From: Takakia lepidozioides
Taxonomy: Eukaryota > Plantae > Bryophyta
Reading direction: 5' to 3'
NCBI GenBank assembly: GCA_030704615.1
Contig: CM060732.1
Coordinates: forward strand, 62,372,001 to 62,436,000
Length of the DNA: 64,000 nucleotides
The position numbers and the translations under genes were made by a program. The notes beneath the pieces were generated by a model, which was not told the origin of the DNA, made no database searches, and saw nothing but the letters and a program-made list of their open reading frames with translations. How positions within the stretch are numbered: the first letter of the stretch is position 1; each line of letters starts with the position of its first letter. Shown here in pieces: positions 9,969 to 57,830 of the stretch.

Positions 9969-10757
9969 TTCAAAATTTGTGTTGCCTAACGGATTCCACA
10001 GAAAGCAGTACGTCTGTCAAATGCTCCACTCACCCGGTCACTCACAGGCAATATGAAGCAGAACCCATATGGTGCAGCCATGAGAAAGACGGAAGGCAGC
10101 AATGCAGGGGTGCGCATTGACAGTGTTGTGCATGGACCACATTCTTGGCAGCCCCAGTCTTGCCTGCAGAGCCCCTCATACAAGCTCCAGCCTCCAAAGT
10201 CCTTCCTACAGGCAGCGCTCTAGCAGCATCCACATCGCTTATAGAGTATAACTACTTGTGGTGATTTTCTGAATGAGCCTGCTTCAAGATTAAGAACAAA
10301 ATGTGGCTTACTGGATTTGAACCCAGACGTTGGTTGCGCTGGAGGCCTTCTGCAGGAACAGGTGGAACCTCCTCTCTCTCTCTCTCGGATGCAACGCGAC
10401 AAGAAACAGAGATGACGAATCGCAGATGCGTTTGCGCTGCAAAACATGAATCCCAATCACAGTCACAACGATGGGATTACGGACAGTTACTTATCAAGAA
10501 TTGCTTGTTTGATGCCACGGCTGCAGATGCAACGTTGCCAATAATCTTCTGCAACATGCACGGACTGGACAGATGGCCTTACCACTCATACTTACACCTC
10601 CGGGAACAGTGTGTGAGGCGTGTGAGAAAGAGAACGGGACAGGTGACGAATTGAGAGAGATATCTGCCCGAACGAATTCGAGTTGGAGAGAAGGAGAGGC
10701 TGAGGATTTGGGTGTATTGGCTTTGTTTTGTCTTCGTTAAGTGGATTGATTTCAAGC

Positions 10758-25968: not shown

Positions 25969-26200
25969 CAGTGTTGGACCGGTATATGTGGTTAGACCTG
26001 AGTATTGAGTAAGGGTATGAGTAATGGTACGAAGAACCATAGAACCATAAAAAGCCTCCATCATAACAACTGTGATGAACAGTTTCTCCGTGTTGCATGT
26101 ATTGCGTCTAGCTCGTGCTTCAGAAGCTTCAGAGACGTACCATACCAATGTTCATATACCCCTAGTATGAAAAATTCAGTACCAATACCAGCGGTGCATG
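25969..26200 (+). mobile_element. Degenerate copy of the hAT MITE family
   Basis: CAGTGTTGGACCGGTAT at 25969, with GGTATG motifs on the left and ATACCA motifs on the right. The right TIR and TSD are not recognisable. Confidence 0.45.
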
Positions 26201-26360
26201 ATCAGGATCCTGATCATCTCTGGAGCATCCCTCGTCTCAAGCCCACTTGGAGGGGCCAGTGAGAGTCCTGGAGCATAGCAGACCCCCTAGACATTTTTTT
26301 TTAAATGTTGAATAAGAAAGGGCGAGGATTGAAGCGGCCCTGCCAGCTCTATACTAGTAA

Positions 26361-26694
26361 GAGCATCTCCATGGGGGGTACACTAAACACCACTGCACGG
26401 TAACCTCCCACGACCTTGAACACTCCCCTCCCCCAAAGGCAACTCCATCAAATTACCCAGCACATGTAATTTTTGATGATGTGCCTTGCTGCTGAGGGAC
26501 CACCTGGCAGACACCGCCTTGCCATCACGCCATAAAATGCACGCCGGCGTGCTTTTTAGTCGCTCCAGCAGGTACCGGCCGGGTTGACGAGGGCCCCTAT
26601 CCTGCACCAATGTGCGGCCCCGAGTGTACGGATACCAGGGCCGGGGGCTCAAGTACCCTTGCCGTGGCATTTAGGGACACCGGTGGGGATGCTC
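26361..26694. mobile_element. PIF/Harbinger (Tourist-like) MITE, 334 bp
   Basis: TAA|GAGCATCTCCA ... TGGGGATGCTC|TAA: a canonical Tourist-type TIR with a 3-bp TAA TSD. Confidence 0.88.
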
Positions 26695-32600: not shown

Positions 32601-33054
32601 GCAATATTGTTTTGCACAAGTTTGTGCTTACATCGATTTCTCCCTCATTATAAAAGATTGAATAGATTACTAGGTATGAAGTTTGGTTATGCATTTCAGT
32701 ATTCATGAGTACTTCCAAATTTCAATATTCAGCAAGTATTCCTCAGCTGGTTTTCCATCAAGTTTTTCAATATTTTAGTACATCGATATATATCCACATT
32801 TAAATATTTCAGCCAGTTCAAGCAAATATTTCAATGTTATACTAGTATTTTCAGCGATGACCGTTAGGTCGGAGTTTGTTTAGCATAGATGACTATTGGG
32901 TCCATTAGTAGTGATTAATACTTTTGCTGCCAACATGACAATTCCAGAAAAACAGACGACAATTAATTCGGAAAGAAAAATAAAAAACCAAAGAGAAAAC
33001 TGCTGAAACTTCTTTGTTTTAATTACTTCCCAATATAAACATATGGAGTAATTG

Positions 33055-33399
33055 AAACCACAACTCTGAGAAATGAGAGAGGCTCCAAAGAAAGAGGAGC
33101 TATGTATAAGTGTTGGGTTATTTCTCATACTTCCCATTCATGAATAAGAGCATGATGGGTTTGACCCACATGCATTGCTCGCTCTGAAAGAAGTGGGTAT
33201 CACTCTCAAACTCAATAACCTAAAACCATAGCTCTGAGACATGAGAGGGGCTCAAGAGAGAGCTGTATGCATAAGTATCGGGCCATTTCTCATATTTACC
33301 ATTCATGAATAGGGACAAGATGGGTGTGACCCTCATGCATTGTTGGATTCCTTTAAAAACAAAAGATAAATGACACTCTCAAACAAATTAATAACCTCG
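33055..33399 (+). repeat. Two-copy ~170-bp diverged tandem repeat
   Basis: aaacca.a.ctctgaga.atgagag.ggctc...catttctcata...ccattcatgaata...gatgggt.tgaccc.catgcattg...cactctcaaac...aataacct occurs twice. Confidence 0.75.
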
Positions 33400-35004
33400 C
33401 ACCTATTATGTTATGTTTGTGCAAAATAAAATATTTTTAGCAAATCATTTATTAGTAAATGATTTTAATTATGCACATTTAGCAAATTTGACCAAAATTA
33501 CAATAAGATAATGTTTGTTGGACTTAAAGGAAAACTTAGTGAGGTGGGTCAAGTCCCTAGATTGAGCTCTAAGGCAGCCTCCACCAGCCGATTCTTTAGC
33601 ATTGAAAAAGAAAGAGACAACTTTAAGTCAAACATTCTTTGTACATTCCATGCTTGTGCGGGTAGTGCCTTTTTAAGGAACCCGCGGGTCTGGGTTTCGG
33701 TTTTCTTTTGGAACCAAGTCCGGGTCTGGATCCGGGTTTTGGAAATTTGGAAAATCAGGGTTCGGAGTCGGGTCCAGGTTCTTGAACACGGACTCAGGTA
33801 GTTGCTGGAAAATATTGGCGGGTTCATCCACGGGTTCGGATCGGGGTCCCCATTAATTGATTAAATAGATTAAGGAAAAAATTAATTGGAGACAAAATTA
33901 TTTTTGGCTGAAAAAAAAACTAAATCCTAATGGTGAATTTTATCTTAACCCGTAATGGACGACACAACCCGTTTCGAGTCGTATCAGAAATCAGAAATCG
34001 ATTTGCCACGATGGCAAATCGTTGGATGACCTCGGATGAAAAAATTTCTAAATGAAAGTTGTGCGCCGTGACATCATGCACATGCCTATCTTTATGGCAC
34101 CCTAAAATAATAAAAGCACTGCCGTCAGTAATTTTTTTAGTGTGCAGGGGTACCCAATTCAGGGCCCTCCAGCAGCTTGGACCTACCAACATGGCAGGAT
34201 ATGGGTGGCTCTACCAATGAAAATTTATTTTGCATGTAGATAGGTTAGAAAATTCTTCTATGCATGTAGATAGGTTAGAATGCTTCCAAATTTTTTGTGG
34301 TAGTGAGTTTCCACGCAATGAACAACATGACCAGATGAATTCTCCTCACATATATATAATACACCTTAGACGCAAGTGGACAAAGGCATAACTTGTGTAT
34401 TGCGAGTTGAAATTTGAGGCAGATTTGGGGTCAATTATAATGGATGGTCTTTTTGACCCACCAATTTTTCCAACAAAGCAACCCTCTTGTGGTTTTCGAA
34501 TTTGGTTTTGGAATTTTGGCCCAAGGTGCTGTACATGCCAGGCAATTAAATGTGCTTATGCTGTATCAATGAAAATTCATTTTGCCAAGCCAATTGCTTG
34601 GTCAAACCATTTTTTCATTCCAAAACTAGAGCAAAGTAAAAATTTACAACTTACATTTTTGCTATGATCTTTGTAATAATGACACGGTGAAATCAACTGA
34701 AATTTTTACAGTAGGTTCCTGAAGTAGGTAGGATTAGTTTCATATGGTTCATCCCCATGGATGTTTGTCAAATGTCAGATATGCCCTCAAACATGAGGGC
34801 ATGTTCCATTTTGGAATGGGCCCACAAAAAACGGGCTTGTCCTTTAGGGGTTAATACTTAATACATATTCCTTCAAAATGTACCATGAATATGTATGGCT
34901 CATTTATAAACTACACGCATGATGACACAATAATTAAAACAGAATTTGAGTTCTATTCTTTGATATCAATCCTAAAACATGTTCAGGAAAATAATATGCT
35001 CCAA

Positions 35005-35243
35005 CAGCTGGTAGCTCAGTTGGAAAATGCACTTAGTGCCACCCGGATGGTTCTGGGGTCAAATCTTGCTACCTTGATGGTTATGGTATGTTCTTCTCTC
35101 CCTTCCGATGGGCGGTGTCCCATGCGTAACCCTTCACGACGAGGTTACTGTGAAAGAGGTTATTTTTTCCTCTCACTATAATTAAGGGGCCTGTTTTGTT
35201 GAGCTGTCGCTCCTAGATGTTTCTCTTTTTAAAAAAAAAAAAA
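35005..35243 (+). mobile_element. tRNA-derived SINE, family A
   Basis: cagctggTAGCTCAGTTGG A box, degenerate B box ggggtcaaatc, 3' hairpin gagg-ttatttttt-cctc and a poly(A) tail. Confidence 0.7.
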
Positions 35244-35299
35244 GGGCCTCAAAGCTCATATATCACTATAGCATGGATGTGTCGGAGCTTGCCTAATGC

Positions 35300-35468
35300 T
35301 AAATATATGAAGCCTCATGAAGGAAGCATAAATTATGGTGTCACTTGACCCCGAAGGGCTACGGCCTTCCAATAGAAAGGTTGACAACTTTGAGACACCA
35401 ATCCGTGGATTGAACCCACAACTACCTTTTGAGGTGGTATGTGCCCATTACCACTCGGGCTACAACTT
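35300..35468 (-). mobile_element. tRNA-derived SINE, family B
   Basis: Minus strand reads gttgTAGCCCGAGTGGTAatgggcacataccacc...GGTTCAATCC...tcatatattt. It is an inverted homolog of 36057-36240. Confidence 0.7.
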
Positions 35469-36056
35469 GGTTGGGATACATAGAAGATCTTACACTTGGG
35501 CTAAGATGACTCTCCACCTTGAGTGGTGGGTGCTGGCTGCTGCATTGGCCTCCCTTTAGGTGGACCCTTCTCTTGACACATGTAAGGTCCGTTGATCACA
35601 TTTTCTCCATTGACTTCAACATGATGCAAAGTCTTTGACTTGAAGGAACATAGCCAACAATAATAATAATAATAATAATAAATAAATAAATAAATATATG
35701 ACGCCAGCCGAAGCTAGCGTAAATAAGAGCCTCTTCCCCTATGAAAATGGGGCGGAGATGTAGTACCTTTCATGAGCTCATCCAATGAGGGAGGAGAGGC
35801 TGCTCTCAAGGTCTCGGCGCAAGTACATAGTAAGTATTATATTTCAATTTTTCTAAGAATTATATATATATATATACATACATATATAGGGCCCACCCCC
35901 GAAAGGGGGCAGTAGCCGCAAGGTGAAGTGGCTCTTAGTTACGGAGGCCTCGAGTCTTCTCTTTCTCTATACATACATATAAATATCAAAAAAAGAACCC
36001 AGGCCTGATCCTCTGTATTCGTTCGCGGATAGCGGGTATACAAGTTCTAGTATACA

Positions 36057-37210: not shown

Positions 37211-39108
37211 GCTACAGAATGCATATAGGCTCCCCCCACTAAAAAACCATGTACAATAAAAAAAAAGGATTTATGGCCAGCATGCCTAGTCTAGTTAGAA
37301 ATGAACCTGGGTCAGTGTCCGGGGGTTTCGGTGATGACTGGGTAATCCGGACCTTAACCCGCCAGTCACCCCGGGTTCAAAACCCGGACCCGCACACCTC
37401 TGGTAGTTTCCAAGAAATGTGACATAGTGAAGGGGGTGTGGAGTGTCCACATGCATATTTAAGAGATGTAATCACTAATCACCCTTTCAGACACCTTAAC
37501 CCTTTTGAACTAGGGGTCGCCCCATAGCAGGCAGGAAACCCCCCAAAAAGGAAAGAAAAAAAACGAATGGAGCAGTGCTTTACGTTGACCGAAAAAATAA
37601 TGGCAGGAAGGCGAAACATCCCGAGGCAAGGCGGGGGTCGAAACTCGCCTCCAGGGCGTCAAATCCCCAGGTATCACCTCGGGAGCTTGATGAGGGCCTA
37701 GGGGGAAACGCAAGTTAGGGTTAGAAAGGGATAATATCCCGGTGGTGCTCGCCGGGATTTTTGGTATCCCGGCCCTTGGCATCCGTCTCTCTCTTGAGCC
37801 AAAAAGTGTGAGAGAGAGGGAGAGACAGACAGACAGGGAAAGAGGTATTTTGCTGCGATTCTGATCGTTGCGGGCTGGTAATTGCATGGCAGGGATCACT
37901 GCTCTGGTATTTGAGGAATCGATTCCTGCCTTCGCTCCCTGCGCTGTGCATTGTGATCTGTGCTTCGAGATCGGTGTGTGTCGTGAGTAATGCAGGCAAT
38001 CGAGGACGGACGTGTGAAAAGATCTATTGGTATTTTAAGAGTAGAATGTGGTGGAGGGGAGTTGCTTGTTTTTCGCTGGGAAGAGGCTATGGCGTTGCCT
38101 TGGACCGGGTTCGCAGATCTGGACGCGGCTTCTGTCACTCCAGGAGATGAGCAAATTGTTTGCCTACTCGGGGATTTCAGTATCGCTTAACTTCGCTGTC
38201 TCTGAAGCCTCACTCCTTTCAAATGTTAACAACTACATGCTCTCTCGTTCATCCAAGGGGGAATTATTGTCGGATGCGCATTTTCTCAATCGTTCAGTTC
38301 ATGTGTTAGATTGTTAGTTTGCTGGAATATTCTGTTCGAGGAGCATTTGTTACTCGCGCGTCTTGAGGCCAGTACCGCATTCTTTGTTTTTTGGTCTGTG
38401 TTCGTAGAATTTCAACTTGTGCTGCCAACTTTTTGCTGCGCATTGATGTGAGCCTACCTGTCCAGACGCTTCTCGGAGGATGGAGCTCGTCAAGTAAGAC
38501 GAGACAAAGGATGGTTTTGGGCGTCAATATAGAAGGTCAGGAAATGCTCCTGGAAATGGAATAGTTCAACAATCCATTCTAAATACAGTGGAAGTCGGTG
38601 TTAGTGACCTTGAATGATGGAATTCTGGCTACTTCTGGAGAGGGCGGATAAGCTCATAAGACGATGCTTGCAGTAGCCTTGACCTCTGTGCCAAGTTTGG
38701 AGCAGTAAGGACAGGGACGGAGAGAGACAGAGTGTGTGTGTGCTGGTTGTACTTGTCGATATATTATCAGCCGTCTAATGACAGCGAGGATTTTCTGAAG
38801 GATGGGTGAATTATGGCCGGATGTTTGTGTCTAGCATATGCAATCAAATTTGAAAAATCTCTTCTGTTGAATCTGTGAATGTTGTCAATGGTTGGCAATA
38901 GATTGATGCCTGTAGTCTCAAATGAGGGGCATTCTTGACAGGTTTCCGTTACAGAGGAGCCAGATTTATACTAGCTTTCAATTTGTTTCTGTTCAGATTT
39001 CTCCTGGACAGTTTTCTCCTGATGGTGCTGGTGAGTAACAACTCAGCTGGACTAAGAAGGGACGGGTATGCATTGGTGGGAAGATAAGAGTGAGAAGCAA
39101 AGCAGACC

Positions 39109-42100
39109 ATGTTTGTGAAGAAGAAGAAGAAGCAGAAGCAGCTGGAGACTGCTAATGGAAGGGAGTCAGGGATATCCTCCGTAGTGACTACTTCGACGTC
39201 TGGGCGGGAACTGCTATCACGAGTGTTGGTGGGGATATCTCCACAGGAAAGAAAGTCCTCTGTCAGGAACAGGCAGAAGATTGCACAGCTCATAGAGCTG
39301 GCTGTTCCTGTTACTGGCGAGCTGTCAGAGCAGAGTGACGAGGGTAGTCTGCAGGTGTCAGAAGATGAGGAATATGTTGGTAGAATGGGGCGGGATACCT
39401 GGGCTGGTGGATCTGTGATTGAAGAAGACTCCGCGAGGAGCTTGATAGTGAAGAGGGTGGAGACTGCCCTGGCACCCTCAAGTGAAGCACCTGCAAAAAC
39501 AGATGACATACACACAGATCGCCAGCAAGATCTGCTCAGAAGGAAAGGTGACAACACCGGGGTTATATCGAATGGCTCAATTGTTAAGGAGGGATGGGGA
39601 AGAATCAGAGGCATTGTTCGACAGGAGAATACAATAACCAATGCCCTAATAGTACCTCAGAGGAGTAATATAGAATCCGCCATGAAAGTGGAGAATTTTA
39701 AAAAGGCTACAAGGGATTGTGACTCTGGGAAAATGGGGAGACCAGGGAAGAGTAAGAAGATAGTTAGTACTTGTGCAGAAGAGAGAGATGGATTGGCCAA
39801 CCCAGGTCAAGAACATGAGAATGCTGTTGGAACCAAGCCTGTCATGTTTGGGCGAGTTACAAGAGGTATGACGGAGAGAGGAGTAGATATTGATCTAGTG
39901 AGACCCGGTCGGACGGACCTTGGGAGAGAAGAGACGGGGGCAGGCAAAGCAACTGATATCACCCAGCGTGAGATTGTCAGGAGGGCTTTAAAGTCACAGC
40001 ATGGTATTGCACAGAGGGGAAAAGAAAAGAGGTCTCCACAACGATCCCAGATTGGAAAGGTTTTGAAGACAAAGTGCAACCGAGAAGCTTCAACAGAGAA
40101 GGGGAAAAGAAAAAAGGCCGCTAAGGCTCTCGATCTGAGCCCCTTAGAGAGTCAAAGAGAAGAGAGAGATGGCAAAGCACTGAAGGTTGTGGGAAGAATC
40201 ACTCGGGGTATGAAACAAAGAGGCCAAGATTGCGAGGAAAATCTCCCTGTGAAAATGTCACAGGAAAAGGCTAGAAAAGTTGTGCAGGTTGAGAAGAACA
40301 ACACCAGAATGGTGTTTGGACAAAGAGCTTCATCAAATCTCATCTCCACAAGCCCTGATGGAAGGACAGAACCTGTCCCCACTGGTTCCCTTTCAATAAA
40401 TTGGATTGCAAAGGTCAGGCAACAACAATCTGGGGAACGGAGAGTCGGGCAACACTGCATCACTCTGTCAGAGGAGAGCAAATTAAGGTTGGATGATGGA
40501 CTCGAGGAGAATCTTGAAAGATCAGAGGATAAGGTCACCAGTGCGAGGACAGTGGGCATAGATGGTGGGAGAAATAAATCAGAACTTAGACAGAAGAAGG
40601 TTGTCAAAGGTAGTTTTGGGAGGAGGGATGGTGCCACTGTTGGGAAAAATCCAAACCAGGGGGTCAAGGACAGCAGTGTTATCTTGAGTGTTGCCATGTT
40701 GCAGGAGCAGAGTGACCAAGACACTGGAAAGGATATATCAAAAGTGCCTATCAAAGGGAGTAAGAGTTGGGAGACTTTGAATAGAAAGAAGGCTGCAGGG
40801 AGGGATGATGGCTTGGATCTGCTATTAGATGACATAAGAGCTGAGTTCGGTGTACAAAAGGAGAAGAGTCCATCCAGGAAGCCTGTGAAGAAGGCCGGAG
40901 TTGAAAGGAGGGAGCCAGATGTGGGTGATAGCAACAAGGTTCGAGAACATGACTTGGATCCTACTGACATGGAGAAGGAAAGATTATGTGAGTTAGGGAC
41001 CAAGGATGTGAAGAGCAGATTGGAAGAAGGGCAGATTGTTGAAGTCAGTTTATCAATGAAGGCGTGGAAGAAAGAAGAAACACAGAGAATTAGGGAGCAG
41101 GGGATTCAGCCGTTACGACGCGCTTGGTTGAAAGGTGACAGGAAACATCTCAAAGAGGCTGGTGTGGAAGTCATAGCTTCTCCCTTGTCATATGCTTTAA
41201 GAGGTAGACAGGGACTGACTCACAAAGGTTTGGAGGATTTCAGAAGTAAAGAGACCGAAGAACTTGATGAGACAGGGGATAAGAAAGAGTCTGTGGAGGT
41301 AAATTTATCAGGCAAGTCTTGTACTCATCGCGGCAAGCTCAAGAGAAGGGAGCCAATTGACAACGAAATAAAAGAGGGAAGAGACGGCAAGGCATCAAAG
41401 ATGGCGAGAAAACAGCGACCTGTTGAGGGGAGTGCTCTGGTCTTGGAAGCTTGTGATGTGGAGGGAACTGTTGTGGAAGAGGGTGCGATTTCAAGAGATA
41501 TGGAGGGTGCAGAAATTGTTAATCTGGATATTGAAGCTGTGAAGGAGGTCAAGCAAGGCAAGGCAAGAGTAAGCAGGCGTGAAAGCAAGAAAGAGGAGCT
41601 CGAGTATCAAAGTTTCCAGGCCCTGTTGAGAAACTTTTTGGTGGCAGGGATGACATCAAGATCTGACACACTGCGGTCTGCTAGAAAGAAGGCAAGTCAG
41701 GAGGCAGGGAATATGCCGGGGAGGTTCCTGGGAGTTATAGAGGCTGTACAGAGTGTGCCTGTGGGAGGGGTCTCGAGTTCCAAGGAGGTCAGCTCTAGCA
41801 ATGCCATTGAAATGCAGATGCTGTCCACATCTGGGGCTGTGAAGAAGCTGAAGAAGGCTATCAGGGGAAATGATGTTGCAAGTGGGGCAAGTGTCTTGGA
41901 TGTGCCAAAGTCTGAAGTCCTGCCGAAGATTACAGATGAATCTTCAACCATCGTGGTGACAGTCCTTGGCAGATTGTTGGACGGAGAGGACATCACGAAG
42001 GATGTCGGTAGGAAAGAAGAGTTTGAAGAGGGACCAGGTCTTCCAGATGAAACTGAACGTTTGAAGGGAGAGGGAGAGCCCCTTAATTCAGAGTGTCAAG

Positions 42101-45100
42101 TGGCTATGGGACTGGAAACTGTATGTGAGAAAATGAAATCTGCTTCCGAGGGTTTGGAAGGAATTGCCATTGAGAAGGGGATGAATGCAGGTGCCACTCT
42201 TGAGGAGCCGGGTGAGGAATTGGCAGTAGAACAGCAGTTGATGTTGGGAGAAGGGGAGCATTTGATGGAGGGCAGACCATCTTGTCATGAAGAGATTGGA
42301 GTATCCAGCAAAGAGGGTACTCACAGCAGAGTGACTGTTGTTCAGGACCATACAGCCTTGTTGGAAGATCAGAGGGTATCACTTGGGGAGCAGAAAGAGA
42401 TCATTGCTGATCAGCACAAAACTGCTATCACTCGAGTATTTCCCCTCTCTAGCGTGGAACAGGATGTGGCTAAGAACAATTTCTGCAAGTTGTTTGAGGA
42501 CACAGGAATCCATGCGGCTAGGAAGGAGCATGATCAGGTTCTTATGGAGTGGGGCCATGGTGTCAGCATTCCGCTAAAGGTTATTGAGAGAGAGGGTTTG
42601 GCTGTGAAGGAGGGGGAGCTCATAAAGGAGGACTTGGATGAGACAGTGAAAGAGGAATTTGGGCAAGAAGTGGCACCAACAGTTTGTGAACTAGAGGCTC
42701 TCTCCTTCAGAAGAACTACTGAAGACTTCTACCGGGCTGAATGCCCTATGCAACACAAGTCTGTCTTAGGAAAGCAGGATGAGGAGAAAGAAGGCCTTCT
42801 TTTGACAGTTTTGGGTGGGAGTCCTCACAGAAATGAGCCAATTCTGAATAAAGAGGAAGAGATTGAGGAAGAGATTGCTGAAGGGGTGGGTGTTGGTAAG
42901 GAGCTAGAACTAGAAGATGACGAGATTCTCGAAGAACTATCGGCTGTTTCACAGGTACAAGAATTCATTTCTGAGGACATTTCTGAGCACTACAAGGCAA
43001 CGCCTATGGGAGAAGATCATCCACATGCAAACAAGGGGAGGCCTAAAGAACCTGAGATGCTGTACATGAAAGCAGAGATTCTTAGGAGAGAGATGAAGAC
43101 GATGATGGATGTGGGAGCACCGGTGACACATAAGGTCAACAGTCTTTTAGAGGGGGTCTTTAAGGAACAAGAGACAGTCTTTGAAGGAAAAGTGAATGTG
43201 ATTGAGGAAGTGGATGTCTCTCAAGAAGATGAACATCAGTTTACAGTTGCTGTTACAGCAGAAGGAAGTTCAGTGAACTTGAGCGATGTTGCTGAGGACA
43301 AGGGAAGAGGTGTGGGCAGACAGGGGGATCATATCAGGGGAGGTGATACCGGCAACAATGAGCAGAGAGAGAAGGGTACTGAACAGAGAGAGGAACTGGT
43401 GATGGAACCCAGTGAAGAGATCCTTAAGCCAGGGCATGGAGACTTGAAGAATCCATTTTATTTCTTACAGGCAGATGACACAGCTTCAAAGGATTGGATG
43501 GAGAGTGAGAAGATGGAGCCTCTGTCTGTCAATGAGCAACTAGTCAGTTGTAGGGAAGATGATGGGATACCTACCGAGTTAGCCCTCTGTGATGAAGGAG
43601 GGACTGACTCTGACCTGAAGAGTTTGATTGCAGACCCGGGAGATGCCACAGGCTACATTTGTTTGGCTGAAAATAGAGTTGAAGTGGTGTGGAGCGGAAG
43701 TTGTAAGGAAGCAAAAGCATATGCCAGGGGCAACATAAAGAAACCAATTGACGTGTTGGAGGCAGAGCGCACCGCTGTAAAGGAGAAGGAGGATGTAGCC
43801 ATGGATGCACCACAAGACAGCTGCATGGAAGATGATGCAACACCTACTCAGCTAAATATCTGCAGGAAACCAGGTTCTGATTCTGAGATGAAGGTTTGCC
43901 TTGCTGAAGACAACTCTGTAGGTTTCACAGATTTCTCCAAGGAAAAACCAGACTTTGCTGAGGGACAAGAGCACATTATCAAAGATCAGGCAGTTGTTTT
44001 CGACAGGAATGACATATGTATGGTTGCAAAGGGAGGTAGTGTAGAGACAAAAATTTGCTATGAGGAAGAGGGAGTTGTGAAGGGAGATTCCATAGAGACA
44101 GTTGACAGTTTGGAGGCGGAGGTGACAGTGGCAAATCACGAGCTGAAGAAGGAGGATGTTGCCATGGTCAAGCGACAAGATGGCTGTAGGGAAGATGATG
44201 TGACACCTCCTGAGCTACATTTCAGGATCGAAGGAGGGGCTAGTGCTGAGTCTAAGGGGTGCAATGATGCAGGAGGTAACATGTATATGTCCAAGGAAGA
44301 GGCATTCACTAGTGATGTAGAGAATGTTAATATCAGAGAACAGGAAGTTGGCTCAGACATGGAGTCTGTATGCTTGGTAGGTATTCCAGAGAGGAGTGAG
44401 ATTTGTAAGGAAGGAGAGGGAGCTGTTAAAAAAGATGGTAAGGATGCAGTTGATATCTTGAAGTCGGAGGGCACAGTGGCGAGGGATCAGATGGACAGTG
44501 GGAAGGTAGACAATGTGCCCGTGGACAAGGAACTCCATGGTTCAAGGGTAGATGACGCAACACCTTGTGAGCTAAATGTCTGTAGGGGTGGAGGGGCTCG
44601 TTCTTTGTCAGAGGGTTGCGTCACTGAATATGGAGGTTTCACAAATTTGTCCAGGCAAGAGGACATTGTCAAAGAACAGGAAGTGGGTTCAGCCAATAAT
44701 GGCATATTTCTGGTTGAAGAGGGAGGTATTAGTTGTAAAGAAGGAGCTGTCAAGAAGCATACAAAAGAGACAGTTACCATGGAGGCAGAGGACGTGGTCG
44801 TGAAGGATGAGATAGAATGTACTCTGAAGAGGGTGAAGGATGAGATAGAGAAGGAGAAGATGGAGGATGTGGACATGGGCGAGGGATTACACAGTTGCAC
44901 CGATGCGCCGATTTCTGAGCCAAAGCATTGGGTTGCTGAAAATGAGTCAGGACTTGTCACTGCTTTCTGTACTGAAAAGCCAGTTGTCGCTAAGATTCAA
45001 GCGGATGTCATCGACAAACATGTAGTTGGTTCATACAAGAGTGGCATATGTATGGTTGAAGAGGGAGGTTCTGCAGAGTGGGGCGAGACTGGTATGGAAG

Positions 45101-48100
45101 TAGAGGAAGCTGCTGAGAGTGATGCTGTGTCCAAGGAGGAATCGGGAGCTATAATAGACCTTCAAGATAGGTTGCAAGACGAAGAAGAAAGCCTGATGGA
45201 AAAACCAAAGATGATTGTGGAAGGGGAGGTGGTAGCTAGGGAGCAGGAAGATGGGTTTGGAAAGCTTGCTGAATTTTTTTTGCAAGAGGAGGAATGTGCT
45301 CTTAAGGAGCTTGAGTGTATTGCTAAAGAAGAGGAGGCAGGTGCCACTGAACAGGGGTTGACTGAGGAAGAGGGAAATCCAGTCTTGGTGCATAGCGACA
45401 TTGAGAAAGCAGAGGGGGCCGTTACCAAGGAACAGCAGATTAGTTCTGCAGGGTATAATCTTCTGATTAGAGGAGGAATCTTTCAGCAAGAGAAGCTCAA
45501 GGTCAGGGGGGAGCCAGAGTTGGTTGAGAAAATCTTGGAAGGGATGATAAACAGTCTGCCTTCAACTGCCTCTGAGTCGTTGGAGGGAATCTGCATATTG
45601 GAAAGAGTGAGAGAGAGGTTAATTGGTTTGGAAGGAGATGACAGTGAACAGCAAGTTGATGATGATGGCATAATAGTTGAGCCATCAACTATGGAGGCAG
45701 CAGAGAACTGCCCAAGTGAACATGGCTTTGGTGAGACAGAGAAGGCTGAAGCTCAATGTTCTGTAATCAAGGAAGTGACTGTACCGCAGGAAGATGCCGA
45801 TGTTATTGTGGCAAAAGAGGCATTTCCTTCACTACAAGAACCAGTGGCTGAGCTTTTGAAAAGTGAAGATGTTGAGAGTGCTTTTCTGGTAGCAGAAGTT
45901 GTGCTGTTGCCTATCCAAACATCAGTGATCACAGAATTGCTCCAATCTGAGAAAGAGACACTGCAACCTTCTCTTACATGTGGCAGTCCTGTAGCATCTG
46001 TAGATCAAATCTCCCTCTTGCGGGAGAAATGTTGGCTCAGCAGTCCAGAGAACCAAAGAGACCTACATATTGACTCTTCAATAAGCCCGAGTAAAACGAA
46101 TAAGCTTAAGCAAGCCATGGCTGACCAGCAGCCCGATACTGTAGGCAACTTGGATTTGCTATCACAATGCCAGAAGGGAGAAGTTTTGGACACACAGTGT
46201 GCAAGCGAGGAGACGGTGATGGTCATGAAAGATACAGCTTCAGGGATAGAGGAAGTTATAGGTTTAAGTGACACAGCAGATGCAGTGAGGCTTCCCACAA
46301 ACAAAGAGGAAACACAACCAGAACCACTCATTGGAGTGGTAATCAATGAAAAGAGAGACTCTGATCATTCACTAGTTCTAGACAAGGAGACTAAACCTCT
46401 GGTGCAGGCATTAAGCACTGATCTTGCTCCAGTCTTCAAAGAGGGAATGCAGCTTGTCCTTCAGGACTCTCAGACAGCAGTGTCAGAGTCTTTTGAATCC
46501 ATGAAAGTCACATCTACGGTAAACAGGGAGAGGCCTGTCCCAAAGGGATTGCAGGGAGAGGTGCAATCGCCCCTTGAAAAGACAGAGATCCTTGCTGAGG
46601 GTTTGAGCTTTGAAGAAGGTATCTTCTTAGAGGGGAATGCCTTTGTTGGTCAGCAACCATTTGAGTCATCAAGTGTGCAACCCTTCTCACTTCCGGTGGA
46701 GTCAAGAGTCGATCAGCAACAATCTAACAGTGTGGTATGCATTCTTTCTTACTCTTTCTGAAGCAACTTTTTCCTCCATATTTTTCTATGACTGTGAGCT
46801 ATTTTTTTTTCTTCTGAGACTCCACGCCTCAGGTACATTGTGCTTCTCCGGTTGCAGCTCCAGCCTGAAGAGAGGGATGCCTCAAATGCCAAAACTCAGG
46901 ATGATGCACGTCCAAGTAGTACATATAAGAAGAAGGGCAGGCCTTCTTTGAAGGAATTGGGGATGCCTCAGGTAGTTGGGAGGGAAGAAGAGACGGGTCA
47001 TCGCTTGGATGGAAAGAAAAGAAGGCGCATGCTGCTACCTATGCCTGTGGATTCTGGTACTCGCCGCATCCGACCTCGCCCACTTGACCCAGAACAGCCT
47101 ATTCCTGTCTTTGTTGAAGGTCGTGACAAGGTGAGCTTGGGTACCTTGCTTTGAACAGATAGTCAGGTCCTGTATTGGTTTTAGTTCCTCCCTGATTAGC
47201 ATTCTCTGTGAGGGCACTGAACTTTCAACTCTGCTCTGTGGCAATGTCTGTCCCTCAGTAGTGTGACACCATTCCAGATCTCATACTACGCCATCTAAAG
47301 AATCTTCAACTGGAACCTCAATTTTGCTGGAGCAAGGTGGCTGGCCCTAGTTTTTGTGGTTGTGTCTGAAACTCACAAATATGGAATGGTTGGTAGTGTT
47401 AGTGTCAAGTTCAGAGCTGAGGAATGAGGAATAGATGAACACGTGGCTTCAATATTAAGGATTCTACGATCTATCATGGAAGTCATGTTACTTTTGTCTT
47501 TCAGGAGTATGATGGGGGTGCATTTTACCACTGGTTACGGCAACAAGGGGAAGGGGGTGGTCTTACGGGTGCTGGACTGGATTCTGTGGCTGGGAATGAT
47601 GATACTGTTGTTGGAGGTGGAACTGCCTGCACTCAAAAGTTTGTCAATAAGAAGAGCATCATTGCAATCCCTTCGTTTAGAATTGTGGCGGACTACGAAG
47701 AAAGACAGCAACAGCTGGTCAAGGGAAAGCAGCTGGCATCTTGTGCTCATGGGGTAATTTTAATGTATCTTTTGTCCATGTACTGCTTCTCTTGAGACGA
47801 AAACTCGTCTTTACCTTGGATGTGGCTATATTTTTATTTTGGTTACCTCTCAAATTGGTGTTCAGATTTTTACTAGGCTCTCACTTGATATATTTGTCAC
47901 TCCCTTGAAGTGGATGACCATGCACTAGGTGATTCCAGTTTTCAGCACCTTAAGTGTTGATGGTGAGACCCTTGCCATGTCACGGCTAATTCTCAACACA
48001 CTGAGGGCTGAACACCCAAACGAACCCTTTATTTGGATGTGACTAATCCAGATGATTAGTCTGTAGGTGGGAGCATGGTGCACTTGTGGAACTTGCTGAT

Positions 48101-51100
48101 AGTGGGGTCTGATTGCCTGCTCCATGGGGTTGCAGACTGTCAAAAATCAAAGTTCAATGGCACTGCCTTCAGCATATGACATGGATGATGAAGATGAAGA
48201 GTGGCTGCGCGCATGGAACCAGCATGTGAACCAAGCCAGTTCACAACAGTTGCTCCCAGACAACAAATTTGAAGAGATAATGGAGTATCTGGAAAGAGCA
48301 TCAGCTCGACTCATGGAGGAAAAGCAAAGTTCTACCTCCCAGCTGTCGAGCTCTATCCAAAGATCTTCTCTCCCATTGGTTTCCAATCTGTCAGGGTCTG
48401 CTCAACTGACCAACGAGCCGTCGGTCACCACAAGCCTACTACCCCTAGCTTCTACCCCTTATGTCCCTGTTCCGTTGAATATGAAACCATTTGGATCTGC
48501 TCCACTGAGATCTGGGCATCCTCGTCACAAGAAGAAGGCAGGAGCTTTCCAAAGCTCTGAGAAAAGGGTGGTAGTGGAGAGCATTGCAAATCTGCATGGG
48601 AATCTTGCCTGGGAGTTCTTACCAGGGGCCAATGCTGCAATGCCCAGTGAGCTGCCGACTAAAAATAGGAATGTTGGTTTGGAGCGAATCGCACAGAAGC
48701 TGTTAGTAAGTACAGAGTTAGAGAGACAAATAGAAGGACAGTTAGAAAGGTCATTGGAGCATCCAGTGGTATTGGATGCTGGTCCACAGAGGCTTTCTGA
48801 GGAGTGCTCTATATGTAATGGAGGGGAGGACTCACACAACAATCCGGTAAACTTTTTAAAACAATTATTTTGTGGGGAGAGATCTCTTCTTCATGCTGGT
48901 TTAATTCTGAGCTTAATTTTTCTAACCAATGTTTAGCTTTTTCCAGAATTTGTAAAGAAGTGTTACAAATAAATTGCTTTGTTGGGTTTGCAGGTTTATA
49001 AATGCAAGCTATGCTTAATTCACGTCCATCAGTCATGCTATGGTATTCGCGAGAAGTTCCGTGATGACCATGGTCGGGTTATTGCCCCTCCTAACTGGTG
49101 TTGCAGAAAGTGTGAGGCTGTGGCTGCAGGCAAGACAGAAGCAGATATCAGGTATCCTCTGTTTTGCCTCTGCTTGTGGCACTTCATGAATGGCCACAAT
49201 GATGGTTAGTCGTTACTATGGTTTGTGTTTATGAACTTTGTTCTTGACGTCTGATGGAATAGATTTCTTTGGTGGGAGTACTAGAAATGTGTATCTGGAG
49301 TTTTAGTGGACTGGATTATGAGTAACACACCACAACTGGATTGTGTTGGTGTCTGTGGCAGCTGTGTGCTGTGTCGAAAAAGAAGGGGTGCGCTAAAACC
49401 GACTGTCAATCCTGAAAAATGGGCTCATGTCGCGTGTGCTCTTTACACAAATGAAACCTTTTTTGTTGATGCTGATGCTATGGAGCCAATTGATGGCATT
49501 GCGGCTGTTGAGGCACGTGTCCAGAAGCAACAAGATCGGTGTGGATTGTGTGGTGTGAAAACGGGTTCATGTGCACGCTGTGCTGTCAAAGGCTGTAGAG
49601 CGCCATTCCACATCTCTTGTGGGGTGAGCCAGGGGGCAACCTTTCAGGCAGGCTATTTCCCACTCGCCTGTCTCTTGTGTGAATTTGTAGAAGCAGTTCC
49701 CCCAGTCTTATTCTTCCTTCCACAAACCTTTTGTGCTCCAGAACAACCTGGGCAGGTCCTGATGCGGTGGGGACAATGTGCTTGTGAACAAGGATGTCTG
49801 TGTCCATCTGACTGTCTTTTTCTTCCTTGGTCTCTCTCATGTGTTACACATCATCCACCTAAAACTATGTTTCCTGCATGCTCCAGTTGCGGCAATCTAA
49901 GCAGCAAGTTGTAGGCGTCCGCTCTCTCTGCCCGCGACATGCTGGGACACCTCCTGTGTCAAACTTTCCCTTGGAATCTGTGGTGGGGAGGAGAGAAAGC
50001 TTCACGGTGACTAGTGGTACCACAAGTAGTGCTGCTGCCTCAGCAACAGCCATGGGCAACATCTCAACAGCATCATGTATGGACTCTAAGGAAGTAGGGA
50101 TTCAGGATGGAATTGTTGAAGTGCCTGTTTGGCAGGAAAGTGAAAAGATGACAAGAAAGCTTGCCAGACCACTGGGTGAAGGGAGAGGGCGACCCGTGGG
50201 TAGAGGAAGGGCGAAAGGGAGCTCTCTCTTTGAGGATGTTAGTGAGGGAGGTAAAGGGGGGCCCTCTTGGAATGTGGGAGGTGAAAGGACGAAGGGAAAT
50301 CTTGGTATTTTGAAGAGGAAATGGGGAGAAGCTTTTGCGCGAGAGGCCCGGGAGAGGCTTATAGGGAATGGTGAGGTAAGGTCGGTTGGCACGTATGGCA
50401 TGGCCATTGGTACTGGTGGGGTTTCTGTCCTTGAGGCTCAAGGGAAAAACAAGGCCAAGGATAGGGGTGGACAGGAAGTGGGTGAGCCAGGCTATCTCTC
50501 AACTGTTAAGAGATTGAGAATCAAGCATGGTGGGCAGGCTCTTCATTCAGCAGGCACCAATCCATGTGTTCCGGTCCCTCAGGCTAAGGGTGGCAGTCTC
50601 AGCAGCCTGGTGAAGATTCCGAAAGAGTACACCTCCAGAGCAGGCCAGTTTGGGGCTGAGGATTCCCCTGTGGACCAAGAGGAAGGGATTCCTTCTGAGA
50701 GGCATGCAGAGAGAGGGCTTGACCAAGCATCAAATGCGGCTGAACATCTTCTGATCCTTCAGGAAGCTATGCAGTCAGAGCTTGCAGCCCCACATGTTAT
50801 GAGGGAAGCATTTGTGTATTGGTGTGCCAAGCGTGCCAAACTCAATGGGGCACTCCTTCATGACCTACAGCATGTACGTCTATAATATTCGACAGGATTC
50901 TACTATTTTAGTGCAGTCTATGAACTTCCATAATAGTCCCCCCTGCAACACTGGAGTACTCAGGATGTAGAGTTTATTTGTAGGGTGCATTTTCATCATC
51001 TTTAGTACATAATCTCTGCTTCTTCCTCAACTGACAGTTCAAAATAGAAAACAGCTGTTGGGTTTGGAGTGACAAGAACTTATTTGTGCAGGAACAATTG

Positions 51101-53386
51101 TCAAAAGCACGGGGCATTTTCAACAAGGATGCTAACGAGGAGAAGTTTCCGGTGGTGCCGGAGTCTCCCCACCACCACCCTCCATATCAACGACTCCCTT
51201 CTGTGGGTTCTGAGACTGTGTGTACTCTCCCCATCCTTCCCTTCTCTTCAAATTCCTTGGAAACAGAAAATCTGCAGTCTTGTGAGGGGGCTCAGTGACA
51301 GAAAGAAAGAAATTTAGTATACCCACTGGAAGCCTATGGGACACATTAGAACAACCAACTACAACCACAGAAACCAAAGAACAAATAACCACCAAATGTT
51401 GTACGAAGAGGGAGTGTCTACTTCACGTCATCATAGCTGGAGGCTTCCAGTAGAGACACAGAATCTCTAGAAATATATCAGTCTCTACCCTGCATCTCGT
51501 AGTGGATAGGGCACAAGAAGATGCCTTGTTTCCATGGTGCAAATTGGGCAAACCCTATCCTCCTGAGGTGTCTCACTCCATCTCCTGTCTCAATGCAGAA
51601 CTTCGTGAAATGACTCTGAAGTCGCGCCCGAGGAACTTAGATAACTTAACAATAAGTTGGGAAGGCATGATGATGTGGTTGTCTCTCAGAACAAGGAAGG
51701 TTCTTTCTAGGATTGGTCTCTGGTGTGAGCTGGCTTGTCGGCCCCACATATGGAACTTCCTGAGATTCTCTCATCAACCTGTTCCCTGACCTGCCACCAC
51801 ACACTGGAGAGGGACAAGGATAACATCCAGAGGGGGGCCCCAAGGGTCAATGGGGCATGGTAGAACAACAAGAAAAGTGACTGCAGAAAACACCATAAGG
51901 CCCATGGGTACACTAGAGAAGCCACTACAAAAAACATCAGAGAATGCCAGAAGGGGCACTAATGCAGGTAAGCTGTCAACGAGAGGGAGAGAGGAGAGAG
52001 ACCTTGTGTCTGCCAATGGCCATGTGCGTTACTTTCAAACACGTTTGCTTGTGGCAGATGTGGGGGAAGACAATAGAGTTGCGGAGGCAGCTGGAACTCA
52101 TGCGGTCACTCACCCAGGCAGTGGTGCAGCGTGAAAAACTCAAGTATGAAGGCCAGCTTGTGCTCCATGACATAGCTATGCTTGAATTGAACATAGCTCA
52201 AGGGAAAGCCACGGAGAAGCATTGTTTCTGGTGTTTGAGCAGCAAGAATCTCCTCAATTGTAGAACATGCCTGCGAAGCTTTTGCTTTCAATGTTTTAAG
52301 CATCGGAAAGGTTTTGGAGTGAAGGGTTGGGTTGCTGCGGTCAAACAACCATTGTACAGCTGCAGTGTTTGTCAAGAGGGTGGGATAGGCACCATTAATC
52401 AGCAGAAGTTGGAGCTGCCGGTATCAGTTGGGGGTGTTGAGGGAGTCAGCAACATTGCCGAGAGCTCCTCTGGGGCACATAATGTTGCTCAGAACCCCCC
52501 TGAAACAGGAAATACATTATCCACTGGACGGCTCGAACCCACAGAGTTTGGCTTAAGTGTGGATTACATATCTGTCAACAAGCCGACAGCTTGGAGTGGA
52601 GGGACAGGGAAATGTAAAGGGAAGGGTAAAGGCTGGAGAGGGCATGAAAGCATCCTGATGGGACTCTCGTGTCCTTTCAAAGAGTCTGTAGGAGAGAAAA
52701 AGAAACTTCTCACTAAACAACTGGAAGCTTCAAACATAGGACAAAACAAGTTTGTGATTCGAGGCGGTTTGCTGGAGCGCGAGTCCGGCTGTGCAGGTAC
52801 TTCCCGGCTTGAGGCAGCAGTGGCTAGTGTCAGAAAGGCAGGAGAATGTGCGACCACAGCTACAGAACTTGAGCCTGTTCAAGAACCTGGGGGGGTGAAA
52901 GAGTTAGTGAAGGGAGGTGCAGGTCATTGGTTAGGAGTGGGAACTCAATCAGCATCAACGCCCGAGTTTCTAGTGTACAGCAAGAAGAAAAAAGGAGTGG
53001 AAGGGGGTGGAAATGGAAATATGTCCAATCCTGAGGGTGGCAAAGTAGAAAAAAATCATTTCCCGGTTTCTCCCTCCAGGCTTATGAATTCCAGGTCTTA
53101 TAAGGAGGGGTCCCCTCAGCAAACCAGGAGTGAGAGGATAGTCAAACTCTCCGAGCTTCGGGATACAGCTGCCATTGGCCAGTCAACCACTTTCAGTGGC
53201 TCTTTGGAAGCTCCTTGTGCTGCAAGGGCAGCCCCTTTGACAATAGTTGACAAGGTACGATTGCCACAACTTACTGCAAAAGGCAAGGGGGTACCCAACA
53301 GTTTGAGTGCAAAGAAGGGGCGCCCTCCTGGGAAAGCCAAGGCCTCATCGAGTGCTCTTGTGCCGTTTAATGACGGCCGACTTTAG
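39109..53386 (+). CDS. BRPF/JADE/Nto1-like MYST histone-acetyltransferase scaffold: giant acidic N-terminus, EPC-I (EPL1), PZP, EPC-II, ADD-like PHD, AT-hook-like motifs; ~3,900 aa
   Basis: Approximate exons: 39109-46734, 46858-47130, 47505-47753, 48136-48846, 48994-49151, 49362-49647, 49887-50873, possible small exon(s) near 51040-51150, and 52058-53386. Motifs: RRIRPRPLDPEQPIPVF, IAIPSFRIV, YDMDDEDEEWL (EPL1); CSICNGGEDSHNNPVYKCKLCLIHVHQSCYGI...WCCRKC (PHD1); CVLC...GALKPT...WAHVACAL...CGLC...C..C...C...FHISC...CPRH (Zn-knuckle-PHD2); YWCAKRAKLNGALL and LRRQLELMRSLTQAVVQREKLK (EPC-II). Confidence 0.88.
43530..45100 (+). repeat. About five diverged ~90-120-aa coding repeats in the giant exon
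   Basis: SCREDDGIPTEL, SCMEDDATPTQL, GCREDDVTPPEL, SRVDDATPCEL and HSCTDAP recur, each followed by ...QEVGS...ICLV..GG...C.EG.V.K-like blocks. Confidence 0.75.
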
Positions 53387-57225: not shown

Positions 57226-57830
57226 ATGGCTTTGGACATGGCTACGGTGTTCTCTTCCCTTGACCTTGCTTCTAGTTTTTGGCAAGTGGCCCTTACCGAA
57301 GAGGCTAAGGAAAAGACCCCTCTTGTGTGCAGGATGGGTAAATATCAGTACGAGACTATGCCCTTTGGGCTTTGCAATGCCACCTCAACCTTCCAGCGGT
57401 TGATGGACATTGTTCTTGGTAATCTCAGGTGGGAATGTGCTTCAATTTACATAGATGATATCAATGTATATTCTGCTAGCTTTGAAACTCATCTGCCGGA
57501 TCTTCAGAGAGTGTTCAGCAAGCTGAGATTAAAGGTTAATCCCAAGAAATGTGAGCTTTGCATGCCTGAGGTGCATTTTCTTGGTCATTTGCTGTTCAAG
57601 GATGGTTTACTACCTAATCCTGCTAAGCTTGAGGCTGTTTGGGGATTTCCAGTCCTTAAGGATAAACACTGTGTTAACACATTCCTGGGACTTGCCTCCT
57701 ATTTCCGTCGATTTGTCAAAGACTTCGTCAAGCTTGCTCATCCTCTCACAAAGCTGCTGCTCAAGGAGGCCAGATTGAGTGGGCCAAGCTGCAAAAAGCA
57801 GCCTTTGACAGGCTAAAAATGGCACTCACA
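57226..57830 (+). mobile_element. Ty3/gypsy reverse transcriptase fragment
   Basis: FSSLDLASSFWQV, EKT, YETMPFGLCNATSTFQRLMD, YIDDI, KVNPKKC, VHFLGH and FLGLASYFRRFVKDF. Frameshifted near 57775; no integrase. Confidence 0.92.

Follow-up and report, generated by a model that had tools for sequence, protein, structure and literature searches.

A probable green-plant counterpart of BRPF/JADE/Nto1 scaffolds in Takakia lepidozioides carries an ADD-type zinc finger after EPC-II

We analyzed a 64,000-nucleotide stretch of the Takakia lepidozioides genome (the window) and located a nine-exon gene on its + strand, using spliced RNA contigs and frame arithmetic (Table 1). Transcription and splicing of this gene are seen in RNA contigs from two studies; the joints are of the GT..AG or GC..AG type, and all exons are in frame. 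An earlier note on this DNA had let the gene start at 46858, but an RNA contig joins 46734 to this position (GT..AG intron, in frame, phase 0), which makes 46858 an internal exon start, and extends for at least 1.1 kb into a 2542-codon open frame. The gene thus begins at least 7.6 kb further upstream, and we placed its start at the first ATG downstream of an in-frame stop codon (39091-39093). Because the 2542-codon exon joins exon 2 in frame, the product is about 3,900 residues long; RNA covers the last ∼1.1 kb of the 7.6-kb exon 1, whose full translation is inferred from the open frame. The region encoded by exon 1 is acidic, with a Glu content of 13% and a net charge near -158, has no Pfam match and shows no similarity to the N-termini of orthologues by BLAST. 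Further downstream, the 49647-49887 joint is RNA-supported (GC..AG intron) and the 51217-52058 joint is present in two RNA runs. One RNA contig stops at ∼49138, and no RNA contig spans the predicted intron at 49152-49361; the acceptor of exon 6 was set by frame and by colinearity with a fern protein (P0069). A TRF scan of the gene yielded no tandem repeats of note.

Table 1. Exons and encoded features of the Takakia scaffold gene (window coordinates)
Feature	Position	Strand	Basis
Exon 1, 2542-codon acidic N-terminal region, non-conserved	39109..46734	+	Uninterrupted ORF; RNA covers at least the last ∼1.1 kb
Exon 2, KKKGRP AT-hook-like motif and start of EPC-I (RRIRPRPLD..PIPVF)	46858..47130	+	RNA joints
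Exon 3, middle of EPC-I (IPSFRIV..YE)	47505..47753	+	RNA joints; colinear with Calypogeia P0004 residues 2444-2518
Exon 4, end of EPC-I (YDMDDEDEEWL), linker, first PHD1 Cys pair (CSIC)	48136..48846	+	Pfam EPL1, RNA joints
Exon 5, rest of PHD1	48994..49151	+	Pfam PHD_2/PHD; donor inferred, GT at 49152
Exon 6, Zn knuckle plus the larger part of the extended PHD (ePHD)	49362..49647	+	Pfam zf-HC5HC2H_2
Exon 7, end of ePHD (CPRH), GRGRPVGRGR AT-hook-like motif, start of EPC-II (FVYWCAKRAKLNGALL)	49887..50873	+	RNA joint; colinear with orthologue alignment
Exon 8, EPC-II linker (GIFNKDA motif)	51092..51217	+	RNA joints, GT..AG ends
Exon 9, first part, EPC-II helix (..QREKLK..), presumed ING/EAF6-binding helix	52058..52222	+	AF2, profile, RNA
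Eight-Cys (C4C4) PHD-fold finger, ADD type	52223..52372	+	Cys codons from 52223 (start of the first) to 52372 (end of the last); frame from RNA-defined exon start 52058
C-terminal tail, KG/RG-rich stretch, KKGRPPGK AT-hook-like motif, stop codon	52373..53386	+	ORF

Domain searches were run exon by exon. The order EPC-I, PHD-Zn knuckle-PHD (PZP), EPC-II, which the earlier note had read from the letters and proposed to check with HMMER, is borne out: the Pfam models EPL1, PHD/PHD_2 and zf-HC5HC2H_2 match on separate exons, and EPC-II is recovered by a profile. EPL1 matches exon 4 (E = 1.4e-7) and places EPC-I upstream of the zinc fingers; phmmer with the first 95 residues of exon 4 returned no match in the PDB. 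Exons 2 and 3 align in order to the EPL1 region in the Calypogeia orthologue P0004, exon 2 to its residues 2391-2440 at 52% identity. PHD and PHD_2 were found on exon 5 and zf-HC5HC2H_2 on exon 6 (E = 5.6e-21), the best PDB matches of exon 6 being JADE3/JADE1 (E = 2e-19; JADE1, 8e-19), NTO1 (1e-12) and BRPF1 (2e-11). Exons 7 to 9 follow the EPC-II alignment of 12 land-plant orthologues, in which the IFN motif of exon 8 is invariant; a profile of these sequences matches residues 165-273 of human EPC1 (E = 1.9e-4) and, weakly, yeast Epl1. Residues 2-51 of exon 9 are modeled by AF2 as a helix (pLDDT 95-98), which in the model is continuous and leads directly into the eight-Cys finger. Bromodomain (PF00439) and PWWP (PF00855) are absent from the exons of the gene and from all plant orthologues scanned. 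The GRGRP and KKGRPP motifs noticed before were found again by a regular expression for (R/K)GRP, with the canonical GRGRP at 50184 and KGRP variants at three other places (43033, within exon 1, 46933, and 53315); these AT-hook-like motifs are too short for statistics and have no Pfam match. The C-terminal tail shares the motifs LVY.KKKK and KLSELRD with two bryophyte relatives (P0001 and P0003).

Frame arithmetic confirms the position of an all-Cys finger directly after EPC-II, as the earlier note had described it. An alignment of 28 finger sequences, from chlorophytes to gymnosperms, reveals eight invariant Cys and one invariant Gly, and only 36 relatives were found among 1.84 billion representative sequences. 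Judged by this conservation, the finger is a real domain, far beyond chance. Pfam returned no match on exon 9 and has no model that reaches threshold for the finger family, which is unmodeled by Pfam, and undescribed. The best PDB match of the finger profile is the PHD of the ATRX ADD domain, over its full length (E = 3.2e-4). The Pfam model of the DNMT3 ADD PHD (PF21255) is matched by 15 of the 28 members, all under the 27-bit gathering cut-off, and the scores of the Takakia finger itself are weak (E = 0.46 against PF21255 and 0.056 against DNMT3L). The AF2 model of the finger has a pLDDT of 88.5, and its top 13 Foldseek matches are all DNMT3 ADD domains. In an unbiased fold scan of 48,161 chains the sole zinc-finger matches among the top 50 were the ADD domains of ATRX (Z = 7.0, r.m.s.d. 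1.6 Å over 53 residues) and DNMT3A/B (Z = 6.3-6.5), with Z ∼7 lying in the "middling" range of the tool's own scale. In a separate fold comparison, ordinary PHDs trail by 1-2 Z units (Z = 5.0-5.8). A feature search of the ESM Atlas returned generic PHD/RING clusters at 0.80-0.83, which we treat as a lead only. RING or B-box identity was rejected: the C-x2-C-x4-C-x2-C core has PHD spacing, the corresponding Pfam models touch at most 6 of the 28 members with weak E-values, and neither type is among the top fold matches.

Profile, Pfam and predicted fold all point, at sub-threshold scores throughout, to the PHD sub-domain of the ATRX/DNMT3 ADD as the nearest known relative of the finger. We found no GATA-like finger upstream: in land plants the preceding 50 residues are one helix without Cys, and in algae this stretch is rich in Pro. 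Likewise, in the 28-sequence alignment the columns before the first Cys, where acidic K4-binding residues would lie, are not conserved and mostly basic or neutral. With neither a GATA-like finger nor an acidic patch for K4, the finger is ADD-type and not an ADD domain; the ADD-like PHD of the earlier note therefore stands as to its nearest relatives, but not as a complete ADD domain.

Orthologues, none of which carries a name, are found in mosses, a liverwort, ferns, gymnosperms (including conifers), and a zygnematophyte. They have the same order of EPL1, PZP and finger, with EPL1 scores of 1e-10 to 1e-15. Chlorophytes (Micractinium, Picochlorum, Tetraselmis) have EPL1 and the finger without PZP, and no angiosperm protein is among the matches of the finger or PZP-scaffold searches. 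The architecture survey that the earlier note had called for thus gives the family a span from green algae to gymnosperms, wider than the single plant lineage it had supposed; the family is old in Viridiplantae, with an apparent loss in flowering plants. Behind the plant orthologues, BRPF1/3, BRD1, Nto1, and JADE2 rank next (E = 1e-21 to 1e-28 for the full-length BRPF/Nto1 matches). In a tree of PZP sequences the plant clade (support 85/83) falls outside a clade of BRPF, Nto1, JADE, AF17, and PHF14 (99/97). In this sequence comparison, the plant proteins are a separate lineage with the same architecture, nested in none of BRPF, JADE or Nto1. Because the tree sets the plants apart, it does not show orthology to any single one of the three. 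Literature searches turned up no publication that describes a BRPF/JADE/Nto1-like protein from plants.

On its domain content, the gene probably encodes a green-plant counterpart of BRPF/JADE/Nto1, the animal and fungal scaffolds around which MYST histone acetyltransferase complexes assemble. That the locus is instead a decaying or chimeric gene model, with the giant ORF and the scaffold as separate units or the whole a pseudogene, is very improbable. The 2542 N-terminal codons without domain or similarity to orthologues and low-depth RNA contigs within intron 8 would fit such a reading. However, a 7.6-kb open frame is unexpected by chance, RNA supports the intron that links it to exon 2 in phase 0, every zinc ligand of PHD1, knuckle, ePHD and finger is intact, and the Calypogeia orthologue, at 3525 aa, is also long and has the start of its EPL1 at about residue 2455.

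The earlier note had proposed a reader combination that could couple H3 acetylation to H3K4me0/H3K9me sensing. In full, this would make the finger a functional ADD-like reader of H3K4me0, alone or together with H3K9me3, that couples NuA3/HBO1-type H3 acetylation to methylation of the tail. We consider this unlikely. The best sequence and fold matches are PHD sub-domains of ADD domains, which bind the unmodified H3 N-terminus, and the finger sits just after EPC-II, at the place of the BRPF bromodomain. But where DNMT3A/ATRX use acidic residues to hold K4me0, the plant fingers have non-conserved and mostly basic ones, and the H3K9me3 pocket of ATRX forms between its GATA-like finger and its PHD and requires the former, where the land-plant proteins have one Cys-free helix. 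Since both features are missing, the proposed sensing of H3K4me0 and H3K9me is speculation. A NuA3/HBO1-type partner is also at odds with a 2008 phylogeny, in which the MYSTs of land plants are only of the HAM type (PMC2606689). A real possibility, short of the probable, is that the finger is no histone reader and serves as a zinc module for structure or partner binding, capping and orienting the helical EPC-II/ING/EAF6 bundle, or as a nucleic-acid binder through its conserved basic, Gly-rich loop (F-K-x-R-x-G-x-G-V-K-G-W). All land-plant orthologues keep the same distance of ∼115 residues between a YW..KR motif and the finger, the helix runs on into the finger, the conserved surface residues are basic rather than acidic, and chlorophytes, whose proteins lack PZP, still have the finger together with EPL1. 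Seven of the 28 members also match the DNA-binding finger of the CDCA7 type (zf-4CXXC_R1; best E = 9e-4), but no CDCA7 structure came up in PDB sequence or fold searches with the finger and ADD PHDs are consistently on top; we retain a CDCA7-type 4CXXC identity only as a minor part of this explanation, under which any ligand of the finger is putative.

For a BRPF/JADE/Nto1-type scaffold, the reading that we prefer, analogy with Epl1/EPC1, BRPF, and JADE suggests how the parts might work. EPC-I would clamp the catalytic MYST domain, which in land plants may be HAM and most likely is, because the 2008 phylogeny has HAM-type MYSTs only. The EPC-II helix would bundle with ING and EAF6, and PZP would hold DNA and the unmodified H3 tail. 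The finger, rigidly fixed at the end of the ING/EAF6 helix, could give an extra chromatin or partner contact, and the AT-hooks may raise DNA affinity. Around this core lie the giant N-terminus, acidic and disordered, the AT-hook-like (R/K)GRP motifs, three to four in number, and the KG/RG-rich tail. The finger is joined to EPL1-type proteins in two different architectures, which suggests that the two are functionally tied. It is possible, though less likely than not, that green plants other than the flowering ones have retained a third MYST complex, undescribed and probably with HAM, in which a PZP scaffold has its ING/EAF6 helix end in a green-lineage-specific ADD-type finger that reads a histone or DNA feature, a module lost at the origin of angiosperms.

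Plant MYST acetylation is understood almost entirely from Arabidopsis, where HAM1/2 act with EPL1 (NuA4) and EPCR (PEAT). We know of no BRPF/JADE/Nto1-type scaffold in Arabidopsis. The Takakia locus and its orthologues imply that such a scaffold was present in the green-plant ancestor and persists in algae, bryophytes, ferns, and gymnosperms. They raise the question whether Physcomitrium or Marchantia has an H3-directed, PZP-guided complex of HAM or another MYST, and what flowering plants gave up on losing the scaffold.

Comparison with JADE1/2/3, the animal HBO1 scaffolds, reveals the same order of EPC-I, PZP and EPC-II, neither bromodomain nor PWWP, and the closest solved relative of the plant PZP. 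JADE proteins lack the finger after EPC-II, the giant acidic N-terminus and the AT-hooks, and the plants do not nest with them in the PZP tree. BRPF1/2/3 and fungal Nto1 (scaffolds of MOZ/MORF/HBO1 and NuA3) also have their EPC split around PZP, but in BRPF a bromodomain and PWWP follow EPC-II, a place taken in the plant protein by an all-Cys finger of PHD type. EPC1 and yeast Epl1, the NuA4/TIP60 scaffolds, share EPcA sequence motifs with the plant protein, whereas their EPcA is continuous, without a PZP insert or C-terminal finger; the known HAM partners in plants are Arabidopsis EPL1A/B and EPCR1/2 (PMC7047200). The finger resembles the ADD domains of ATRX and DNMT3A/B/L in its predicted C4C4 PHD-type cross-brace, equal Cys spacing, F-C-x2-C core and the Gly after the core, but corresponds to the PHD half only, with all scores under the family thresholds. 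The chlorophyte proteins, which have EPL1, carry the same finger family as the Takakia protein; they differ from that protein in lacking PZP and in having a Pro-rich motif (VRGP..PPGV.RD) before the finger in place of the EPC-II helix.

The scaffold gene, which has nine exons on the plus strand and a BRPF/JADE/Nto1-like layout, contains a conserved module of split EPC domain, PZP (PHD-Zn knuckle-ePHD) and helix-finger. We mapped contigs from two public runs (from two studies, labelled as guessed RNA only) onto positions 46600-52500. The contigs are spliced, and thus the runs contain RNA and the gene is expressed; joints are listed in the table after the cut shifts stated by the mapping tool. 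No RNA contig of the two runs covers 49139-49456, where the sequence predicts a phase 2 GT..AG intron at 49152-49361. The fern relative P0069 is colinear across this junction (..AEGEVPADVSCSLC.. in P0069 compared with ..AAGKTEADISCVLC.. predicted for the window), which supports the intron. The remaining exons are in phase 0 with open frames, all zinc ligands are intact, and the added exon lengths yield a protein of ∼3,900 residues. Two low-depth RNA contigs at 51249-51985, one with a 1-base deletion at 51909, lie within the 840-nt intron 8 and could represent intron retention or an alternative transcript. Single-base differences between RNA contigs and window at 48626, 50383, 51918, 52177, and 52469, of which 52177 and 52469 are common to both runs, are probably allelic or strain differences and not editing.

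One RNA contig extends 993 nt upstream of 46600, and the exon ending at 46734 lies at the 3' end of an open frame of 2542 codons. An in-frame stop is located at 39091-39093, and the first ATG following it starts this frame. The resulting exon 1 encodes 497 Asp/Glu compared with 339 Lys/Arg residues, lacks any domain or similarity to orthologue N termini, and is unconserved. It contains at least three diverged C-x-E-D-D-x-x-P-x-(E/Q)-L units spaced ∼90-120 residues apart (43555, 43828, and 44191), and probably a fourth. The orthologue from Calypogeia fissa (3525 amino acids) also has a giant N terminus. In the sequence neighboring the gene, positions 26000-36000 are AT-rich (35-42% GC).

Features of the scaffold gene and neighboring open reading frames (window positions)
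Feature	Position	Strand	Basis
ORF, arginine decarboxylase helical-bundle domain	4624-5613	-	domain match
ORF, PI-PLC X domain	10728-11705	+	domain match
Exon 1, single 7.6-kb exon, ∼2542 residues, acidic	39109-46734	+	open frame
RNA splice joint	46734-46858	+	contig, canonical ends
RNA splice joint	47130-47505	+	contig, canonical ends
RNA splice joint	47753-48136	+	contig, canonical ends
RNA splice joint	48846-48994	+	contig, canonical ends
RNA splice joint, intron 49648-49886	49647-49887	+	contig; GC..AG after resolving 3-base (CAG) ambiguity
RNA splice joint	50873-51092	+	contig, canonical ends
RNA splice joint	51217-52058	+	contigs of both runs
ORF, reverse-transcriptase fragment	57226-57816	+	match

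Similarity and domain searches were run separately for each exon. Pfam places EPL1, the model for EPC-I, in exon 4, PHD/PHD_2 in exon 5, and zf-HC5HC2H_2 in exon 6 (5.6e-21). Among solved structures, the PZPs of JADE3 (2e-19) and JADE1 (8e-19) are closest to exon 6, followed by NTO1 (1e-12), BRPF1 (2e-11), AF10, and PHF14. Exons 2 and 3 align colinearly with the Calypogeia orthologue directly upstream of its EPL1 match and into that match. We aligned the stretch between PZP and finger from 12 land-plant orthologues and found W, KR, G, L, IFN, and RE..K to be invariant. Used as a profile, this alignment identifies human EPC1 in TIP60 structures at residues 165-273 (1.9e-4); its match to the equivalent helix in yeast Epl1 is weak. 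The same motifs are present in unchanged order in exons 7 to 9. Domain matches, exon colinearity, profile and motif order thus confirm the arrangement EPC-I, PZP, EPC-II that the earlier note had read from the sequence.

Exon 9 was searched by phmmer against 1.84 billion representative proteins and matched only 36 (E ≤ 0.001), the conserved span always being residues 3-107, the EPC-II helix plus the finger. In an alignment of 28 finger sequences, eight cysteines and one glycine are invariant; the pattern is C-x-W-C-x8-C-x2-C-x4-C-x2-C-x22-C-x2-C and the conserved core F-C-F-x-C-F-K-x-R-x-G-x-G-V-K-G-W. Downstream of the finger, the tail (52373-53386) has in common with the anonymous bryophyte-like proteins P0001 and P0003 a KG/RG-rich run ending in W, LVY.KKKK, and (I/V)(V/I)KLSELRD.

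Distribution was assessed by cluster look-ups, word searches for names, and Pfam scans. EPL1, PZP, and finger occur together in mosses (Physcomitrium patens, Ceratodon purpureus), a liverwort (C. fissa), ferns (Adiantum and two paralogues in Ceratopteris), and gymnosperms (Ginkgo, Taxus, Cryptomeria), with EPL1 and PZP alone confirmed for the fern (Ceratopteris) paralogues and the Physcomitrium isoform P0108. A partial protein from the zygnematophyte Closterium has PZP and finger. Chlorophytes (Micractinium, Picochlorum, Tetraselmis, several metagenomic proteins, a Cymbomonas fragment) carry the eight-Cys finger on EPL1 proteins lacking a PZP (P0027, P0097, P0094, P0012, P0033, P0034, and P0011), preceded by a conserved VRGP..PPGV.RD motif in place of the EPC-II helix; these proteins may be the algal NuA4 Epl1 orthologues. 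Searches for the finger and the PZP scaffold returned no angiosperm protein, although they did retrieve animal BRPF/JADE and fungal Nto1. This argues for loss of the family in flowering plants, with the limits that many matches come from anonymous transcript assemblies and that length and sensitivity restrict the word search. We found no record of such a loss in the literature or databases searched.

In a tree of PZP sequences, all plant proteins form one clade (85/83) outside the clade of BRPF, Nto1, JADE, AF17, and PHF14 (99/97). The family has the BRPF/JADE/Nto1 architecture but is nested in no named subfamily. Exon 6 branches with the two mosses (99/94), followed by the liverwort as the next lineage outward (95 columns, one gene). 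The orthologues are already in public databases, unnamed, all relatives being annotated as hypothetical, uncharacterized or mis-named, and the component domains are known. The literature searched contains no description of a plant BRPF/JADE/Nto1-type scaffold.

Published biochemistry of Epl1/EPC1, BRPF, and JADE (PMC3792477, PMC5449618, PMC7047200) describes EPC-I binding the MYST catalytic domain, EPC-II binding ING and EAF6, and the PZP binding the H3 tail and DNA; by analogy, each plant domain would engage the same partners. The earlier note had proposed a NuA3/HBO1-like complex. Land-plant MYSTs form a single HAM cluster, with a second MYST in Ostreococcus only (Latrasse et al. 2008, PMC2606689), and we therefore favor HAM over an HBO1/Sas3-type enzyme as the partner, on old and thin data. 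The finger connects rigidly with the EPC-II helix (YW..KR motif to finger constant at ∼115 residues), its conserved loop is basic, and it co-occurs with EPL1 even when the PZP is absent. These properties are compatible with an additional contact to chromatin or DNA, or with a structural role in the ING/EAF6 bundle. The (R/K)GRP motifs and the KG/RG tail would contribute non-specific affinity for DNA or RNA.

The x2/x4/x2 core spacing of the finger is that of PHD fingers, with Cys replacing the usual His. No Pfam entry describes the finger family, and all existing Pfam models score below threshold. Against the PDB, the alignment profile finds the ATRX ADD PHD best (3.2e-4, all eight cysteines aligned); other matches mostly span the first half of the finger only. 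More of the 28 members match PF21255, the DNMT3 ADD PHD finger, than any other family: 15 do so, all below cut-off, with a best value of 1.4e-4 and 0.46 for the window copy. An AlphaFold2 model calculated from the alignment (pLDDT 88.5) has a 50-residue helix leading into a small cross-brace finger. Its first 13 Foldseek matches are DNMT3B/3A ADD domains (E 0.014-0.04, r.m.s.d. 1.6-2.2 Å, 53-56 columns), and VIA-align yields Z 6.0-6.9 for DNMT3 compared with 5.0-5.8 for the PHDs of SP100, MORF, and BAZ2A. A Foldseek-independent fold scan covered 48,161 representative chains; its top 50 contain no zinc fingers other than the ADDs of ATRX (rank 1, Z 7.0, r.m.s.d. 1.6 Å over 53) and DNMT3A/B (Z 6.3-6.5), the rest being single-helix matches to model residues 1-52. 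Individually the scores are all weak, and the tests are not fully independent of one another; taken together, profile, PF21255 and fold comparisons favor "ADD-type PHD" as the best label available.

The finger does not, however, amount to an ADD domain. Acidic residues hold H3K4me0 in DNMT3A and ATRX, and the H3K9me3 pocket of ATRX sits between its two fingers. Across the 28 sequences, the columns matching the acidic residues are basic or variable, with no conserved counterpart, and no GATA-like finger precedes the eight-Cys finger. The suggested H3K4me0/H3K9me sensing therefore has no basis beyond fold resemblance.
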